A model generated the notes under the pieces. It worked only from the letters and a program-made list of their open reading frames with translations. It had not been told where the DNA came from and ran no database searches. DNA of 63,330 nt, counting the filler, from Hyphochytrium catenoides (taxonomy: Eukaryota > Protista > Hyphochytriomycota), in assembly GCA_900088475.1 (NCBI GenBank). It is 10 parts of 10 records of this genome, joined end to end, with 100 filler letters (N's around TTAATTAATTAA, not from the genome) between each part and the next. Parts side by side here need not be neighbours in the genome. Positions count along the whole stretch, not along the records: positions 1,658 to 18,760 come from FLMG01002696.1; 9 more parts are not named here. One strand, given 5' to 3'. A program made the position numbers and the translations under genes. Shown here one piece after another: positions 1,968-16,258 of the stretch (positions are counted from its first letter, which is position 1; each line of letters opens with the position of its first letter).

Positions 1968-4900
1968 ATGATTGTCATATCGGCGGACGATGCGAAAGGG
2001 ATTCGTGCATGGGACCTACGAGGAGAAGATGCTGGTAACAATAGTAGTAGCCTAAAGATTCTAGAAGGTAGCGCCCCTCAGCAGGGTATCATCCGGGTCC
2101 TCGCTATCTCCTCTGATGCGAGAACGCTTGTTTCTATTGACGATGCGACGATCCGCGTGTGGGATGTGGAAGTGTGGGAGTGCCACACCACCATCGAGAG
2201 CCAAAGTATCGCAAAGAATGGTGTATGGACCGTGGCAGTCTCGGCAGATTGCAAGTACCTCGTGTCAGGCTCTACCGCCAGGCAAGAGGATGGTGGGTTT
2301 CTTAGTGTCTGGGACCTTACAGCCCAGTATTGCGTCAGAACTTTCTGGGGTGAGGCGTCCACTCCTGTCTCCAAAGTGGCCATCTCTGCAGATTGTAAGA
2401 CGGTGGTAGCTTTAGGCTTCTTCTTAGATAACACCGCCTATGTCTGGGATATAGAGACCGGATCCTGTCGAAGAAAACTGGCGAACTTCGCACGTGGCGG
2501 AGTTAATCTGGCGCTCACACCTTGCGGCAAGCTGCTCTCATCATGCGACAAGTCCATCAGTCTCTGGAATTTGGGCGCTGGTAAGTGCGTCAAGACATTT
2601 GTAGGGCACAATGGACCGATCAATAGCATGGCGATCTCCAGCAATGGAAAGTATATGGTCTCCGGCTCTTTTGACCTGACTATTCGCGTGTGGGATCTGG
2701 AGTCGGGCGCCTGCCAAAAGACGCTCCAGGCCTACGAAAGTGGGCTTTGCAGCCTGTCAATTTCTCCTGATGGAAGTAGAGTGATTTCTAGCGCTCTCAA
2801 CGGAGCGATTCGTGCTTGGGATGTGCCAACCACGCTTTGCTTGAGGACCATCTTCACAGGAACAAGAGGCACCTGCCACTTAGCATTGGTTAGCTGGTCC
2901 CAACTTCCCCAGCAAGAGGTCTTCAGGACGGCGGCAGGGCCTACTTCTTCTGGAGGAAACAAGGAAGAAGATACTCATCGCCTGGCTGAGGCAGAAGAGC
3001 GGCGCAAAGCTCGCATGCTCTATTGGTCCCTGTTGAAGGATGGTACGCTACATCGAAATGCAGGTGGTGGTGCGGGATATGAGCCTCTTCTGACAACCAC
3101 GAAGGAGGTGCTCGAGAAGATAGAGGTAGCGGTATTAGTTCCAAGCCTCAGCAAGACTCTAGAGCAGATGACATTGCTCGAACGAAAGCTTGACAGCAAT
3201 GCAGCAGCTCTTTTGAAGCTCGATCGCCAAGTCGCGCGTTTGTCGGCGGTTTCTCGGAACTCCCCGAGAGCCCATGAGGTGCTTCAAGAGAGAAACGATA
3301 GACGCAACGAGCTCTTAAACTCTCTCCAAGAGCAGCTCGATATGCTTCAGTCAAAGAAAGAGCTGAATATGGGGAGGCGGCAAATCAGGAAAAAAGTGAA
3401 GTCAATGATATTGTCTTCTTCGCCCATCGCGGAAGGTCTCCTGCTTCCAGAGCACGAGGCTTCGAACAAGGAAGCGGTAGGCAATTTGCACCCTTTTTGA
3501 TTCTTTCAGATACTCTCAGACGGCGGTGAATAAGATGAGTCTAACAGCAGCCTGTACCTTTCTTCTGCTTCTGCTGTTCGCAGGACCCAACAGTTCGAGA
3601 CCTCGACGAGGACATAGTAGAGCCCTTTAATCGGCTGTTAGTCAACCTTGTCAAAAGTATACTTCCGAAGATTGAGACATTGACAGCTCTTTCTGAGGAG
3701 ATCAACGCCTGGCAGGAACGACAACCCAAACTGCAGGAATTTTCTTGGTACTCTTTGTTGCTGTCATTGCCGCCTGACTTGCTAAACATGTCGGAGACTG
3801 TTGTCCGTCACGAACGGCTCAACAAGGAATTGACTGAAGAGACTACTTCTTATCGAACGAGCCTCGAACTCACGCATGCAGCCATCAAAGCTTACCTCTT
3901 GAAGCTGCGTGAGGCTGTAGAAGCAGAGGACTTCCTCTTTGATCAAGGCCAGCTTGATGCTGAGATTATGGAGGTCCAGACCAGCATCCAGCACTGGAAA
4001 GACATAATAGCACTTGGAACTTCCGCTGTGCAAGCGAAGACAGAAAAGCGAGAGCTGGACGTGCAGATCAAGGCTGCGCGACATGCCTTGAAGCGCTTAA
4101 CCGTTGAGAAAGACATTGCAGAAGATAATGACGAAGATGGCTTGGCCAAGCGCCTTCAATCTCTCGAGTTAGAAAGGAAGACGGAGCTTAACGGTCTTTA
4201 TGACAGGGTAGCACCCTTACTGGAAGTTCTGTCTGACAAGAGGCTAGTCGAATATTTCCCGGAGCTGCTGATAGAAGACAAAAGCCCTGTTCATGCTTCT
4301 AGCGCGATCAATGGAGCTTCAAAGATCATTGACATGCACGTCCGCATCAAGGACTACGAAGCTGTAGAAGGCTTTCCTCTGCATCACAGTGCCAGTCATA
4401 CCAATGTCCAGATCATGAAGGACCCTGACGGCCAACTATGCGTTGTCAAGAAGCTTGTAGGGAGAAAGGAGTTCAGGAAGGAGGCAGAGAGGCTTCACTT
4501 ACTGCGCCATCCGCTCATCGTCCCTCTTCAGCGAATCTTTCTTGATGACAAGGACCCCGAGTCAATCTGCTACATTCAATTGCCATTCTTCAGTAAGGGT
4601 AACGTCCGTCCTTGGGTTTTGCGGATGCAGGACCATACTAGGCGCTTTGGCAAGTTCCAGGAAGGGGTCGAGTGGCTCGAAGTGCAGAATACCTTCCGCC
4701 AGCTTGTCCAGGCTTTGGCTCACATCCATGCCAAGGGAATTGTACACCGTGACCTTAAGCCTGAGAACATCTTGCTGGCAGACTCCGGAAGGATCGCGCT
4801 TTGCGACTTTGGAATCAGCTCAGACGTCGGTCATGTTTTTAGTGCAACCACAACGATGCGAGGGGCCATGACATTGGGCTATGGAGCTCCTGAAGTCTTT

Positions 4901-6631
4901 ACTGGTGGTTGGAGAGATCATCCCTTCGCTGTGGATATGTGGTCTTTGGGCTGTATGATGCTGGAGCTTCTCCTACCACTCCTGCGGACTCGCTTGCCAC
5001 ACATGTTTCGTGACGCAGTAGTGATGCTGGCTGTCGTAGACCCAGAGAGCATTAACTGGCACTCGTTGGCGGATTCTTTTGAAGACGTGCACATGAAGGC
5101 CTACGTGCGAGTATCTTCCCAGCTCTTGCATCTCAAGCCCGAAGAGCGCCCAACTGCTCAAGAGCTTCTGCAGGACGATCTGTTTACACAGGTGTATCCA
5201 AAGTATGACCCCTTGGCCAAGATCAACTCAATCATGAGAAACTTGTCGAAGTGTCGGAGAAAAGGTTCCCCTACTATCCGCGTAACCATTGGCAATGCCC
5301 ACCACCCAGAGGAGGCAAATCATGATGATGATGTTCTCTGCCGGAGTCTGTTGCAGGTCTTCTCCAGCTTAAAAGACGTCCACAGTGCTATTGAAGTTGT
5401 GGCTTCTGATGGTGTACGGCGGCCTTTAGCAGAGGTGATGGAGAGGTTTTTCAATCAGATCGTGCTTCCAAAGTACGGCCTCTTCACCCAAAGACTTTCT
5501 CCTGGAGACGCTAGCGAAAAGGAACCAGCGGAAGAAGGAATTGGGGCTGCTAGAGCCGACCATGCATACCTGCCCGCTCCTACTACCGGAAATCCTGATG
5601 ACTTTTATGCGGTAGGACTGATGATGGCCAAGTGCCTTCTAGAAGGGATCCGGATGCCCATCGTGCTAAATACGTCCTCCTTGGATTACCTCCTTGGCCA
5701 CACACAACAGCCTACGAGCGTAGATCTTTGCTTGGCTTATTTGTCCGAGACCGACAAGGACGAGACATCTCTCTACCGAAACATTCTGCGAGGCAGGCAG
5801 AATGCGATCGAGTACGCATACTCAGTTGGCGCACTGACGGGGTCAGAGTCCGAGCAATATCTCACTGACGAGAACAAGACGAGTGTCATACGTGAGGCGA
5901 TATGGAATAAGCTTGTACGAAGCAGAGCCGCCAGTTTGCAGAAGCTGCGAGAGGGCTTTGGAAAACTGGAAATGGCTGCGGAGCTGCAACTCGTGACAGG
6001 CAAAGAGCTGCACTTTCTCTTCTATGGGACTGACTTTCTTGATCTTAGTGAGCTTCGAAGCTCACTTCACTTCATCGAAGACACTTGGCCGGATAAGAAA
6101 GTGATGAAAAAGCTTCAAGCCTGGCTGAAAGAGTGGCTCTTCTACGTCTCGGATCTGACTTTGCGGCTCCTCGCCTTCAGGTCGTTTGGCCATCTGGTGA
6201 CTCAATGGTCCTCGGAACGCCACCGCATCTCTATCGTACCAAGCGCAGACGAACAGGTTCACTTTGTAGCTGAGGCGCAAGTGATTCAGCTTCCCGCTAC
6301 CTGTGCCTGTTATGAGGCCCTGGACATAAAGCTGCGAGATGAGCTGTTCATAGGCGAAGGAGGATTGAAGAGCTCCTTCGAGAGACGAGCTCAGGTCTCT
6401 CAAGAGGAAATAGCCAAAGTAGTGGCTGCTATGAGGTCGGAGATACGTGCTGGGGGCTGGTTCCGCTGTCCCAACGGCCACTTGTATGCAGTCGGGAACT
6501 GTGGTGCCCCAATAGAGCGGACCAAATGCCCTGAATGCCAGGCAAACATAGGAGGTCAAAGTCATAGAGCGGAAGCCGGTAATGTCCATGCCAATGTAGA
6601 TGAATCCACAGCTCCCGCCTATCCTCAGTAG
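1968..6631 (+). CDS. WD40 repeats + coiled coil + Ser/Thr protein kinase + HECT-like domain + RZ-type zinc finger (~1518 aa; exons 1968-3476 and 3584-6631)
   Basis: ORFs 1968..3500 and 3680..6631 join in frame through a 107-bp phase-0 intron at 3477-3583 (GTAGGC donor, CTAAC branch site at 3541, pyrimidine tract, CAG). WD40: FVGHNGPINSMAISSNGKYMVSGSFDLTIRVWD. Kinase: VVKK, HRDLKPEN, DFG, GYGAPE, DMWSLGC. HECT-like: FFNQIVLPKYGLF, FYAVGLMMAKCLLEG, LTDENK, LREGF, ELHFLFYG. RZ: WFRCPNGHLYAVGNCGAPIERTKCPECQANIGGQSH. The start codon is uncertain. Confidence 0.88.
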
Positions 6632-7440
6632 TAGCAGCCTTCTTCCTCCATCTTCCGATACACTTCTATTAATTGCACAGTAATAGCTGCTGCTGCAAAC
6701 ATTTGCTGCAGCTATTGGTGATCCTCCTCAGCATTATGGAGCCTCGCAGCTAATGAATATGCCTCGTCTACAAGTCGTTGCACTGCCCTACTAGCTTGCG
6801 TCGTGAGACCAGCAAATCACGTGTTCATGCTAAATCTGACAAACCAGGAGGAAGCTTAGAGCATTCCTGTCTAGAGATGGCCACCGCAAGGTTCGTGTGA
6901 AGAAGATCACAGGTGACAAACATGTTTGGACGGACCTTGTCTTAGCACTCGAACACTGCGGCCGCCTGTCTCTTCTGTTTAACAATCGCACTATAAACCT
7001 GGTCGTCAATCATTTGTGGCTATCTCCGCAGCGAGGACGCCCGATCGTAGATTATGAAGAACGTTTCCAAGAAGGGAAAGGGTAGAAAGGCACTGGCGAA
7101 CCTAGCAAACTACGCACTGACGGCCGAAGAGATAACCAAGGACATGACCTTCTCATACCGGTAGAGAGTAGGAGCGGGGAAGATTGATAAAGGAGAATTG
7201 ATACCTTGTAAGCACTAACTAATAAGCAGAGTCTAACTTGCAGAATATTGTTAACTCTCGCGTTTATTATTAGAAAAAGCTTTTGCTGAGACTCTGATCA
7301 CTAGTCTTACATATGAGAAAGGAATGCATGGAATGTCAGTCAGTAGTGGAGATGCTGTCTTCTTCTATCGTCAAACACATAGCATAGAGAGGGGGATAAG
7401 GTGTCTGTTGGTTTTGAAAAGATTGAGAAAGGATATACAC

Positions 7441-9452
<2,012 letters not shown>

Positions 9453-11040
9453 TATTTCTAGAGTCTGCAGGGATGAGCTGCGGTCCTAAAGCTCTGGAGC
9501 TTCCTGTCCGGTCGTGAGTTGAGGCAAGGAAATTGGATAATGAAGCTGAGATCTGAAGGCCCTACCTCTGACGCTGCGTGTAGGCGAGATGGAACAGGGA
9601 ACCGAGAAGGGAGAGGAAAGCAGAGACTAGTCGTGCTGGAAGCTGGAAACAACCTACACGCCGTAGCTGGGGCCATGTCTTTGACTTCCACGCCGTCGAG
9701 AGAGAGTAGAGATGTACCAAGACAGGAAAAGCCTGAGGACAGCGCACTATTGATGGCCAGCTGTCTTGTCATGATGTTTGACTACTGGATACCTTGCTGA
9801 CTCCTGGTATCAGAATGGAAGAGGGCGTGCACCGCTTCACTGGATTCTCTCTTAGGCGCACTCTAGTCATCAAACTGAGGAGGGAGCAGAGGACTGACAG
9901 AGGCACAAGCACGAGTCGCTTCCACGCTTTCTTTCTGGCCTTCTCCTGATCTTCGCAGTGTCAGCCCTTCACACAGCATTGGACTAGAGGCTCAGCCAGG
10001 CGAGCGAGCGGGGCGTTGAACTTGAACTTCAAGTGACCAAATAAACTTGTTGACCGCGCGGCCGCTGTGGGGCTGTGGCCCAGGACTCAGAGATCGTAAC
10101 ATAACTCTATCGGACATCAGGCTAACTAAGCCGAGGGAGGGAGAGAGAGAGAGGGGAGAGGCAGAGTGAGGAGACGTAGGAAAGAGCCTCAAGTGAGGCT
10201 CACAGTCACTGCAAATGAGTTTTCTTCGCCTGTCTCTCTTCCCTATGCTCTGTCTGTAGCGGCCACATCATTGCTCTTAGGCGTTCAAAGTGAAGCACTA
10301 ACCTTGTCTCTCTCTCTCTCTCCCTCTCTCTTGACTCTCTCTCCCTCTGTCTCTCACCCTCCTTCTTCTCGCCGTTCTTATTGGCTCTCTTAAACGTTTC
10401 TCCTCGATTATTTCTCTCTCTCCTCTCTCTCGCTCTCTCGCTCTCTCTCTCTCTCTCTCTTTCTCTCTTTCTCTCTTTCTCTCTCTCCTCTCGCCTCATC
10501 CTTCATAATAATACTCCCTTCGGTGCACGACCATTCTGCCTCTTTTCTCTATTGTCACCCTCGTCTTCCCAGGAAAGCTAAAGTAGTAGTAATAATTAAA
10601 GACCTATTTTCTCTTTTATTGGGCGGAGTTTGGTCCTTGACCTGTGCCCGCCATCCGGTTCTAAATCCTCTGGTACTAAACCTATGTCCAAATAGAACTG
10701 GTGGAACCATTATCTTCGGACATTATTTCAGGTGTGAGGTGGTCACGTTAGGCATATTACTATCACCAAACACCGTTTAGAACTATTGACAAACGCTTGA
10801 TATTTTGGGTACGGCTACTTCGGTATCTTAGGGCTAAGAATGACTAAGAAAGGCGATCTGGCCGCTGATTGGACGGGAAGTATCTTTTTGATTGACCAGC
10901 GCTGGAGCGTGCGCCGGTGCAGTGCACTGGAGAGAGGAGAAGAGAGAGAGACTGCGATTGGAGGATAGCAAGAGAGAGAAAGAGAGAGAAAAAGAGAGAA
11001 AGAGAGGGAGAGGGAGGGAGAGAGAGAGAGAAAGAGCGAA

Positions 11041-11074
<34 letters not shown>

Positions 11075-11626
11075 AGAGAGAGAGANNNNNNNNNNNNNNN
11101 NNNNNNNNNNNNNNNNNNNNNNNGCTGGGTGGGCACACAGAGACGGGTGGGTTAACAGGACTTGTAACTCCCAATTGTGCGTACGACGTCGTTTTTATCT
11201 GGACACAGGTAAACTATACTTGAACTCGGAGAGTTGTACCCCGAGGTACAATGCTGGTTACCGTAACTCGCCTTTTATCTCCTTTTTGAGCTTCAGTTCA
11301 AGGTACATCTTAGGGAATTCTACTCCCTCTCACAGTAAAAAAAGGGAATATGTCCGCTGGGTTTCACTTGGTCTTCTACCTCTCCGAAAGTAAAATCTAC
11401 ACTGCATCAGTTCGACGTAGGCAAATCAAGGGAACTGATAAGATACGGGAACGATGGGGTATCCTAGTTAATAAGTATACGCGTAGAATCTTCTACCTTC
11501 GGCAGAAAGTAAGTTTTCTTGCTGCTCGCGGGCAGATCCCTCAAATCTCGGTCTCTGACGTCTGGAAGACGATGCTGACAGAGATCTAACAGAGATTTAG
11601 TAGCATTTCTCAACATTATTGGCCCC

Positions 11627-13825: not shown

Positions 13826-16258
13826 TTACTCTGCCTCCTGACCACCTCTCTCCTTTACGTAGCAGGTCTCAAACTCAATTTCTGACGCCACCATGACCAG
13901 CTGGTTGGGTCGATGCAGCAGACTGAAGACGCTGCGCGCACTGTTAAACATCAAGGTGCCTAGAGTATCTAGGACCAGACTCAGTGGAGAGCGAATGATC
14001 CGCTGCAAGGGAGGAGAGGCAGCTGTTGACTGAACCTGGAGACCATTGACTAGCTCATGTTCTGACGACTTGGTTCCCAGGTTCTTGAGGACCACAAAGT
14101 AAACAACCCAGCTGACCTTCACCGCTAATAATGACAGGAAGTACCGAAGAAGCCACTTCTGTCGCACTGCCACTGGTTGAATGAGAGCGTCTTGGACGAG
14201 GAAAGCAGAGACAACGGTGGCAATGGTTGAGAGAAGCAGTAGGTACCTAAGGGCAAGAGAAGATAAGCATGACACTTCTTCCTAGAGTCAAGCAAGGAGA
14301 AGAATATTGATGAGGAAAAGCTTGATAGGCTGCAGCTTACCTTCCGTCCCACTGAAGAAGAAGCCCTCCAAACACTGAAAGTTGCACGGAAGCGAGAGAT
14401 ATGGTGAGGAACTCGAAAGAGTGGCTCACAAGAGAAAGAAGCTTCGTGGAGCTGCGCAGGAGGAGAACCGCGTTCACAGCAACATTAAAAGTGAGGAAGA
14501 GAACGTCCCAGGCCAACGTAGCATTCAGAGTTCGTAGCAGGGCATGAAGAAGCAGGGCAACAATCGTTCCAGCAGAGAGCGCAGAGTTCTCCAGCCACCG
14601 GGCTGCTTGTTTTTTCCTCTGCCCGTCCTTTTCCTCCCGCCGGGTACGATATTGTCCAGAGTCCAAGGCATCTTTTGCCTTCGACCGATTCTGAGGCGCT
14701 ACCTTGTCGTTAGATCGCGCATAGATTATTCTTCTTCTCAGGCAGTGGCTAAGGGTATCATCTTTCTCCACAGTCAGGGTGGTTAACAATGGTCTGAGTA
14801 CGAAGGCCTTGCGATAGCCCTCTCGCCTGTCAGACCCAAAGAGTGGAAGAGATGGCAGTATTATTAGTGGATACATTCTCACTGTCGTCGAACGGAGGAA
14901 GGAGAGATTGCGAACAAGCGAGGAGGTATTGCGTCTAGATTAGAGAAAGAGAGAAGCCGTTGCGGCTCTTTGTGATGGCAGAAGATCGAGCATGGGAAGA
15001 AAGAGTGGTGGGACTCCTTACTACCTAGTTCTGCTGATAAGCGCAGCGCCAGTTCCCGCAGTATCATGCCCAACTTCACCGCCGAGGATTGTCTGCGCTG
15101 CACCTGCATCTTTCAATTGGACTGGCCATCTCATGACAGTAAAGCGCGCGGCGCTCGGTCGCTTGGCACCTTTCCAAACCATGGCAGTGTACCGCCGGAG
15201 CAGCTGCAACATTAGAACGCCCATGGTCGCCATAGAATCAGCCGCCACTAACCATGGGCGGAGAGGAACATTGAAGACCACGAGCTCAAGCTGCTGCAGG
15301 TCTGGTGAGGTGTTCGAGTAGAGTGAACCTGCAAGCCTAGGAGGGCAACAGGGACAGCCAGCAGTCTTCATCAGTATTCAGGCTAAAGGACGAACAGAAG
15401 AGGAACTCTTTTGACATCATTAAGAGTGGGAGGAGACAAACGGCTTTACCAGAGCAGATAGAAGCCAGCGAACAAGCTGCCGCAAACTACTATCAGTGTT
15501 GCCGCCTTCGACGCCGCGATCTGGGGCGTGGCGTCCACAATGAAGATTGTGAAGATGCCGGAGATGGAACCTGTGATCAGTGCCGCGGACCGCGTGAAGT
15601 CTCTCCGGACGAAACCCTCATAGAGCATGAAATGCAGCAGAGGAGCAATGGAGTGGAAGACGAAGAACCAGCCCTGAAATTGCCTGAACAGTGTCTTCAA
15701 GAGGCGAACATGGGCTTCTGAGCAGAGAGATGTACCATAAAGGCCGAGAAGAATGGCGCTACAAGCCCTTAGACCCTGTGTTCCCCCGCCATAGAGCATC
15801 AAAGTGAACATCAACAGCCCAAGCGTCAAGGAGAGTCCGACCAAAGCTGTATACAAGCCTGACTGCCTTAGCGCACTATACCACGCCAGCAAGACTGAGG
15901 GGAGAGCAGCAATGGCAATAGTTTCTCTGGGGTTGAGCGCCGCGGGTAGGTAGTCTGGCACTGGCGAGATGGTCCAGCAGGACCCTACTACTACGGCCAT
16001 GATGATCAACAGAGAAGCCCCAGTCACCTGCCACGACTCGCAGTCATGCTGATGATGATGGAGAAGGGCAGGAAGAAGCTATAGAAGAGAGACAGAAAGG
16101 ACGCCAGCGCGTGCCAGATCTTGATAATGATGAGTCTTCTCCTTGTTCACCCCTGGGCTGCTGCTGCTGCCAGGCACTTGGTCTTTGAGGAGGAGGCGGG
16201 CGGCGTGCGCTGTGTCTCTTCTCCATGCACCTTCTTCTCCTCCTCCTCGCTGCTCCAT
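13826..16258 (-). CDS. Multi-pass membrane protein of unknown function with two similar modules
   Basis: Four hydrophobic ORFs splice in frame through phase-2 GT-AG introns: exons 16027-15450, 15336-15025, 14826-14341 and 14246-13826. The first exon (ATG 16258) is tentative, and the 3' end could be the stop at 13826 or a donor at 13829. Confidence 0.6.

Follow-up and report, generated by a model that had tools for sequence, protein, structure and literature searches.

RZ-type zinc fingers with ubiquitin ligase (E3) activity have been characterised in only two proteins, RNF213 and ZNFX1, each of which carries an unusual element for docking the ubiquitin-conjugating enzyme (E2): the C-terminal domain (CTD) in RNF213 and the Z-RING in ZNFX1 (PMC12075652; bioRxiv 2025.09.05.674436). 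In the finger of human RNF213, C4505, H4509, C4525 and C4528 bind zinc, while C4516 is the ubiquitin-accepting nucleophile and H4537 is the general base (PMC11549300). The equivalents of this catalytic pair are C4462 and H4483 in mouse RNF213 (PMC12075652), and Cys1860 and His1881 in ZNFX1 (bioRxiv 2025.09.05.674436). Among the HECT ligases, T656 and F690 of E6AP are E2-interface residues (role of F690: PMC8635412), and the N-lobe of canonical HECTs has, in addition, an exosite that binds ubiquitin non-covalently (PMC8635412). The literature search showed no described protein with both a HECT domain and an RZ finger, RNF213 and ZNFX1 being the sole RZ ligases discussed. The stretch of DNA analysed here (the window) consists of 63,330 nucleotides from Hyphochytrium catenoides (assembly GCA_900088475.1), and its plus strand contains a gene (1968-6631) whose predicted product joins a HECT fold lacking its catalytic cysteine to an RZ finger at the C-terminus.

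Analysis of the 1518-amino-acid product showed the domain order WD40 repeats, putative coiled coil, Ser/Thr kinase, bilobed HECT fold and C-terminal RZ finger, and the gene is predicted to encode a multidomain signalling enzyme. The observation is real and lies far beyond chance. The product would be a hybrid transthiolating E3, in which a HECT-derived scaffold docks the E2~ubiquitin conjugate and the tethered RZ finger provides a Cys/His pair, a reading whose chance of being right we place slightly above even. The protein family was defined as the approximately 25 representative clusters that matched the whole HECT-like and RZ module in an exhaustive search, while a word-indexed protein search returned three close relatives only. 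A domain scan of 25 family proteins detected HECT in 24, Pkinase in 22 and RZ in 20, so that the co-occurrence of HECT-like and RZ domains with a kinase is conserved across the family.

The RZ finger matched ZnF_RZ-type (PF20173) with an E value of 3.2e-21 and 75.1 bits against a cut-off of 27, over residues 919-969 (Pfam match residues here and below are numbered along the open reading frame (ORF) 3680-6628). It aligned without gaps to RNF213 chains in the PDB (E value 3.6e-07), and the spacing C-x3-H-x6-C-x8-C-x2-C-x8-H was exact, with the six residues beginning at 6467, 6479, 6500, 6527, 6536 and 6563 paired with C4505, H4509, C4516, C4525, C4528 and H4537 of human RNF213, respectively. The RNF213-like spacing that the earlier note had given was thus found in full, with all six residues in a gap-free alignment. 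Among the 21 family members with an RZ region, the first zinc ligand was kept in all 21, the nucleophile Cys in 18 and the distal His in 18. The three remaining members (P0032, P0053 and P0070) had lost Cys and His jointly, and such joint retention and joint loss of a Cys and a His that bind no zinc is the pattern predicted for a catalytic pair. These three metagenomic proteins retained the kinase and the four zinc ligands, carried a Pro/Gly-rich insert in place of the nucleophile loop, and form a sub-lineage with an apparent pseudo-RZ. The same C-terminal tail that follows the finger in this family was also observed in other RZ proteins.

For the domain upstream of the finger, Pfam gave a HECT match with an E value of 2.4e-14 over residues 591-819, covering only positions 4-226 of the 306 in the profile. 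A family profile built from 24 HECT-like regions and compared with solved HECT structures extended the match to both lobes, with E values of 3e-13 for HUWE1, 3.5e-12 for E6AP (1c4z) and 1e-11 for NEDD4, and the alignment with 1c4z spanned family profile positions 16-340. An AlphaFold2 model from a 19-sequence family alignment reached a predicted local distance difference test (pLDDT) score of 86.4 and a predicted template modelling (pTM) score of 0.79; a model from a 3-sequence alignment (pLDDT 42) was unusable and was discarded. Searches of the 19-sequence model with Foldseek and VIA-align returned HECT domains only, at Z scores of 17-19.5 (NEDD4, HUWE1 and E6AP). The best structural match was NEDD4 2xbf (Z 19.5), in which model residues 2-365 corresponded to NEDD4 537-891. 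The N-lobe alone superposed on HUWE1 7jq9 with Z 18.8 and a root-mean-square deviation of 3.3 A over 222 residues, and on E6AP 8gcr with 2.8 A over 220 residues. Since the profile, the AlphaFold2 model and the structural alignments all span both lobes, the region is, as modelled, a complete HECT fold of N-lobe and C-lobe without the active-site Cys. This HECT domain is not C-terminal, since approximately 94 residues (linker helix, RZ finger and tail) follow the C-lobe.

The motif EQVHFVAEAQVIQLP at 6251-6295 contained no Cys. In the profile alignment, the HUWE1 stretch LPTAHTCFNQLDLP-EY was aligned to the family consensus l-p-r-f-e-s-e-s-g-v-l-e-L-p-a-n-c, and the HUWE1 catalytic Cys (HTCFN) therefore fell on a position that is not conserved in the family and is occupied by Glu in this protein. 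Cys was found in this column in none of the 24 family representatives, which include Mesostigma viride, Myrmecia bisecta and Amoeboaphelidium occidentale. This absence across distant relatives argues that the loss of the HECT Cys is old and that the fold, being kept, was retained for a non-catalytic function. The earlier note had described 5438-6600 as a HECT scaffold that apparently lacks its catalytic Cys and is not C-terminal, and each part agrees with the present results: the translation reads as quoted, the profile alignment puts the HUWE1 Cys in the very column that had been named (Glu, 6272-6274), the helix and RZ finger follow before the stop codon, and the structural alignment that it had proposed recovered the full fold (model residues 1-365 against NEDD4, HUWE1 and E6AP, Z 17.7-19.5). 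The co-occurrence that it had asked about was also favourable, with 24 of 24 members lacking the HECT Cys, 18 of 21 keeping the RZ pair and three having lost both residues of that pair; this result supports a replacement of the active site.

In the hybrid E3 that we propose, the HECT-derived bilobed domain has permanently lost its own thioester Cys, its N-lobe would dock E2~ubiquitin, and its C-lobe would possibly cradle the donor ubiquitin. The RZ finger, tethered at the C-terminus by a helix of approximately 20 residues, would work as it does in RNF213 and ZNFX1: its GNCG Cys would be the nucleophile, on which the thioester would form, and its GGQSH His would be the general base. Ligase activity may also be linked with the kinase or with the WD40 repeats as sensors. 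The known RZ ligases each use a different E2-docking module, and a third one, here a HECT fold, would fit this pattern.

Comparison with described systems showed likenesses and differences on every side. With RNF213 the protein shares identical RZ ligand spacing and the Cys/His catalytic pair, a catalytic zinc finger set apart from the E2-docking element (a predicted one in this protein), and a nucleotide-binding enzyme domain in the same polypeptide, here a protein kinase. Unlike RNF213, it has no dynein-like AAA core, RING, E3-shell or CTD E2-binding domain, its RZ finger lies at the extreme C-terminus behind the HECT fold, and it measures approximately 1,500 amino acids against 5,207. In ZNFX1, a superfamily 1 (SF1) helicase, the RZ finger likewise lies near the C-terminus after a helical linker, but the E2 dock is a RING-like Z-RING and the core is a helicase, where this protein has a Cys-less HECT fold and a kinase. 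E6AP, NEDD4 and HUWE1 have the same bilobed fold, and the domain start, GR..AK, T..NK, the L..F.TG-like helix of the C-lobe and the LP strand of canonical HECTs are all kept; the replacement of Cys (by Glu), the absence of a free C-terminal tail and the diverged E2-binding small subdomain set this protein apart. In logic, the proposed layout resembles the RBR ligases and the MYCBP2 RCR ligase, in which an E2~ubiquitin dock is combined with a separate zinc-binding domain bearing the catalytic Cys, and in RBR ligases a His base accompanies that Cys. An RZ finger stands where those ligases have Rcat or TC, and the dock here would be HECT-derived and not a RING; no homology to either ligase class was detected in the window protein.

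Several observations weigh against the hybrid E3. The E2-binding small subdomain is the least HECT-like part in sequence: when the profile was restricted to the first 215 residues (the first part of the N-lobe), the E value was only approximately 1e-3, and the strongest matches (UBR5) ended before the small subdomain. The joint loss of the RZ Cys and His in P0032, P0053 and P0070, all of which keep the HECT-like domain, indicates that the HECT-like module can persist without RZ catalysis. Differences in the gene between strains or alleles comprised approximately 15 non-synonymous and 8 synonymous changes, an excess that relaxed constraint could explain, as could rapid adaptation. In Lagenidium giganteum P0012 and Cymbomonas tetramitiformis P0122, other Cys-rich C-termini replace the RZ finger, and the IBR-like region of P0012 could bring its own E2-binding RING, as suggested by matches that are all sub-threshold.

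These same points feed the rival that survives best, an unlikely one, in which the RZ finger is active and the Cys-less HECT fold is not the E2 dock. The fold would then be a ubiquitin- or substrate-binding scaffold, or a regulatory spacer between kinase and RZ finger, with E2 recruited elsewhere through an unrecognised surface or a partner protein. The weak conservation of the small subdomain relative to canonical HECTs is consistent with this, as are the ubiquitin exosite of canonical N-lobes (PMC8635412) and the Lagenidium protein, whose weakly IBR-like, Cys-rich replacement of the RZ finger might include its own RING. Pfam, however, detected no RING, U-box or RNF213-type CTD in the 1518-amino-acid product, and the N-lobe, small subdomain included, superposed on canonical HECTs at 2.8-3.3 A over approximately 220 residues. 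For the E2 interface, the comparison covers one position only, reached through HUWE1: the Tyr of its NKKEYV stretch, which we take to be the equivalent of E6AP F690 from the motif NKxE[YF]V. In this column, 20 of the 22 family rows had Val, Ile, Leu or Met, so that an aliphatic residue is kept where the presumed F690 equivalent lies.

The HECT-like domain and the RZ finger could also both be without ligase activity and together serve an active kinase as a regulatory tail that binds ubiquitin, zinc or a ligand, which we regard as quite unlikely. The non-ligand Cys and the distal His have been kept in 18 of 21 members over deep divergence and were lost only together, a pattern that a purely structural zinc finger would not give, and both RZ proteins characterised so far act as E3s through exactly these residues. 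This stands against the lack of the HECT Cys in every family member, the three relatives that keep the domain without the RZ Cys/His pair, and the high non-synonymous share between strains.

A HECT nucleophile moved to the LPxxC Cys (6302-6304), accepting ubiquitin alone or through a two-cysteine relay of the MYCBP2 RCR type that includes the RZ Cys, is very improbable: this Cys is present in 20 of the 24 members and lies in the C-lobe immediately past the strand that comes after the former catalytic loop, but its column is that of the Tyr in canonical LPxY, and Val, Tyr and Ala replace it in P0004, P0016 and P0015, all with an intact RZ finger, as does Asp in P0012. From this alignment and these replacements, the first Cys of LPATCAC probably has a structural role in the core rather than that of a nucleophile. 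Among the 24 members, only this protein has the second Cys of TCAC. In a few Mesostigma paralogues, a Cys stands 2-3 residues past the canonical position, but it is not conserved even among the paralogues of that species. Of the interpretation in the earlier note, the HECT fold, the loss of its Cys, the intact RZ finger with its six residues and the co-occurrence all held, while its suggestion that the two TCAC cysteines are alternative nucleophiles was weakened.

The family is spread over distant organisms, and its N-termini vary. The named sources with the module were the streptophyte alga Mesostigma viride, the chlorophyte alga Myrmecia bisecta and the aphelid Amoeboaphelidium occidentale, the rest being metagenomic; this spread takes RZ biology well past animals. 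Variants with a HECT-like domain and no RZ finger were found in another chlorophyte (Cymbomonas tetramitiformis) and in the oomycete Lagenidium giganteum. N-termini comprised ankyrin repeats in 6 proteins, USP7-like MATH and UCH domains in 2 and a clathrin propeller in 2, compared with the WD40 repeats of the window protein. Mesostigma viride demonstrated at least 5 loci (P0007-P0011 and isoforms) with the kinase, HECT-like and RZ module, and these loci differ in having ankyrin repeats, USP7-like MATH and UCH domains or a clathrin propeller at the N-terminus. Mesostigma P0009 has approximately 1,400 more residues after the RZ finger, and some of the N-terminal and C-terminal fusions in relatives may be artefacts of gene models.

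The Cys-rich regions that are not RZ lie at 530-891 in P0012 and at 330-571 in P0122, each behind a Cys-less HECT-like domain. The region in P0012 gave an IBR_1 match of 20.5 bits against a cut-off of 27, and a weak match (E value 0.68) to the Ariadne-1 (HHARI) chain 1wd2, which is presumably RING2 of that protein. The two sequences hint that one kind of zinc-finger active site may have been exchanged for another on a common HECT-like scaffold. Among 39 other long RZ proteins resembling this finger, 22 were ZNFX1-like helicases, the most frequent setting of such fingers, and HECT was absent from the 25 of 41 domain families listed for those proteins. Feature and shape searches of the ESM Atlas returned canonical HECT clusters only, and no large cluster with this architecture was found in them. 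On the contig of the relative P0003, a Peroxidase_2 (heme-thiolate peroxidase) gene is a neighbour (L002 2413-3030, minus strand); this family is typical of fungi and oomycetes, and the neighbour gives a hint as to what sort of organism the close relatives come from.

A wider and more tentative possibility is that the protein is a third independent build of an RZ ligase, in which an ancient HECT domain became the E2~ubiquitin receptor of a portable RZ finger and is wired to a kinase and to sensor repeats that vary (WD40 here, ankyrin in algal paralogues), acting in kinase-coupled cell-autonomous defence and possibly on non-protein targets. The defence role is proposed because the multiple Mesostigma loci, the variable N-termini and the high non-synonymous share are reminiscent of the parts that RNF213 and ZNFX1 play in immunity. 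The layout, apparently a kinase fused to an RZ-type E3 built on a HECT-derived scaffold, is undescribed in the literature searched. If the reading is true, the RZ finger would be a portable active site that can be transplanted onto another ligase scaffold. The kinase fusion would likewise extend the published pairing of RZ ligases with nucleotide-using enzymes (PMC12075652; bioRxiv 2025.09.05.674436). At approximately 460 residues, the HECT-RZ module would offer a compact system for studying the demands of an RZ finger on its partner domain, a question that is hard to address with RNF213 because of its length. It would also be a natural experiment on the roles of the HECT fold other than carrying the thioester, and is of interest to ubiquitin enzymology. 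The coordinates of the features of the gene are shown in Table 1.

Table 1. Coordinates, in window positions, of the predicted features of the kinase, HECT-like and RZ gene of Hyphochytrium catenoides
Feature	Position	Strand	Basis or remark
Gene	1968-6631	+	Two exons and one 107-nt intron; 1518-amino-acid product
Exon A	1968..3476	+	WD40 beta-propeller (at least 6 repeats), then start of putative coiled-coil region
Predicted spliceosomal intron	3477..3583	+	GT..AG, 107 nt, phase 0; sequence-based
Charged helical linker resembling a coiled coil, at the start of exon B	3584..4465	+	Translation; between WD40 and kinase
Kinase beta-3 Lys, within VVKKL	4442-4456	+	Motif search
Ser/Thr protein kinase domain	4466..5185	+	Pfam Pkinase, E value 1.7e-36, profile 43-263 of 263
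Kinase motifs	HRDLKPEN 4745-4768; DFG 4805-4813; APE 4886-4894	+	Motif search
HECT N-lobe (large and small subdomains)	5255..6037	+	AlphaFold2 model and superposition
HECT C-lobe, diverged, without catalytic Cys	6038..6349	+	Profile-to-PDB and structural alignment
Glu codon GAG at canonical HECT catalytic Cys position	6272..6274	+	Profile alignment
First Cys of LPATCAC	6302..6304	+	Family alignment; probably structural
Helical linker, C-lobe to RZ	6374..6430	+	AlphaFold2 helix 374-392; conserved in family alignment
RZ-type zinc finger	6434..6586	+	Pfam PF20173
RZ zinc ligands	Cys 6467-6469; His 6479-6481; Cys 6527-6529; Cys 6536-6538	+	RNF213 alignment
RZ predicted nucleophile Cys (GNCG)	6500-6502	+	Aligned with human RNF213 C4516
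RZ predicted general-base His (GGQSH)	6563-6565	+	Aligned with human RNF213 H4537
Short conserved C-terminal tail N-x-D-x-S-x-x-P-A-[WY]	6587..6631	+	Family alignment
Stop codon	6629-6631	+	End of 1518-amino-acid product

The gene lies in eukaryotic DNA of approximately 51% G+C. It was assembled from two long plus-strand ORFs, 1968-3500 (510 amino acids) and 3680-6631 (983 amino acids), whose in-frame join through the intron gave 1518 amino acids with zero internal stops. Frames upstream of the ATG at 1968 were checked and contained in-frame stops, and the protein starts in the middle of a repeat; an additional upstream exon beyond the piece is therefore possible for the 5' end of the gene. 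The WD40 region in exon A was detected by Pfam with an E value of 1.5e-33 in 6 stretches, and relatives have long charged regions upstream of the kinase comparable to the linker in exon B. The kinase has the Pkinase fold together with the HRD, DFG and APE motifs and the beta-3 Lys of eukaryotic Ser/Thr kinases; a canonical glycine-rich loop was not matched in it, and the Pfam Pkinase match begins at profile position 43.

Variation within the species was assessed from two DNA runs of the same organism (X1 and X2), each of which covered 3400-6602 on single contigs. Over this interval, the two runs had 12 and 17 substitutions relative to the window, and none of the differences touched a key HECT or RZ residue. 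The sole 1-nt indel in X2, at 3513, falls inside the predicted intron, as do 4 of the 19 listed substitutions of that run, and both coding indels are of 3 nt; this pattern supports the predicted intron and the reading frame. The C-terminal tail had two changes, and an I-to-V/M change (6512 and 6514) lay within the RZ finger. Each run also had two alternative 123-nt contigs at 6573-6695, which suggest two haplotypes, and short contigs identical to portions of the gene were found in two soil metagenomes.

Downstream of the gene, the minus strand carries at 7910-9089 a family-1 glycoside hydrolase (beta-glucosidase) gene interrupted by short introns, with exon-like ORFs at 8772-9089, 8287-8676 and 7910-8347 and a score of 0.96 against Glyco_hydro_1 clusters in the ESM Atlas feature search. 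The interval 10206-11393 contains an assembly gap (N run 11086-11123) between purine/pyrimidine-rich low-complexity flanks, and its ORFs are probably not genes, since they translate into RE/SL low-complexity repeats in several frames. At 13826-16027, the minus strand has several ORFs of 149-193 amino acids (for example 15446-16027) that are strongly hydrophobic and membrane-protein-like, and these are possibly exons of a gene for a multi-pass membrane protein.

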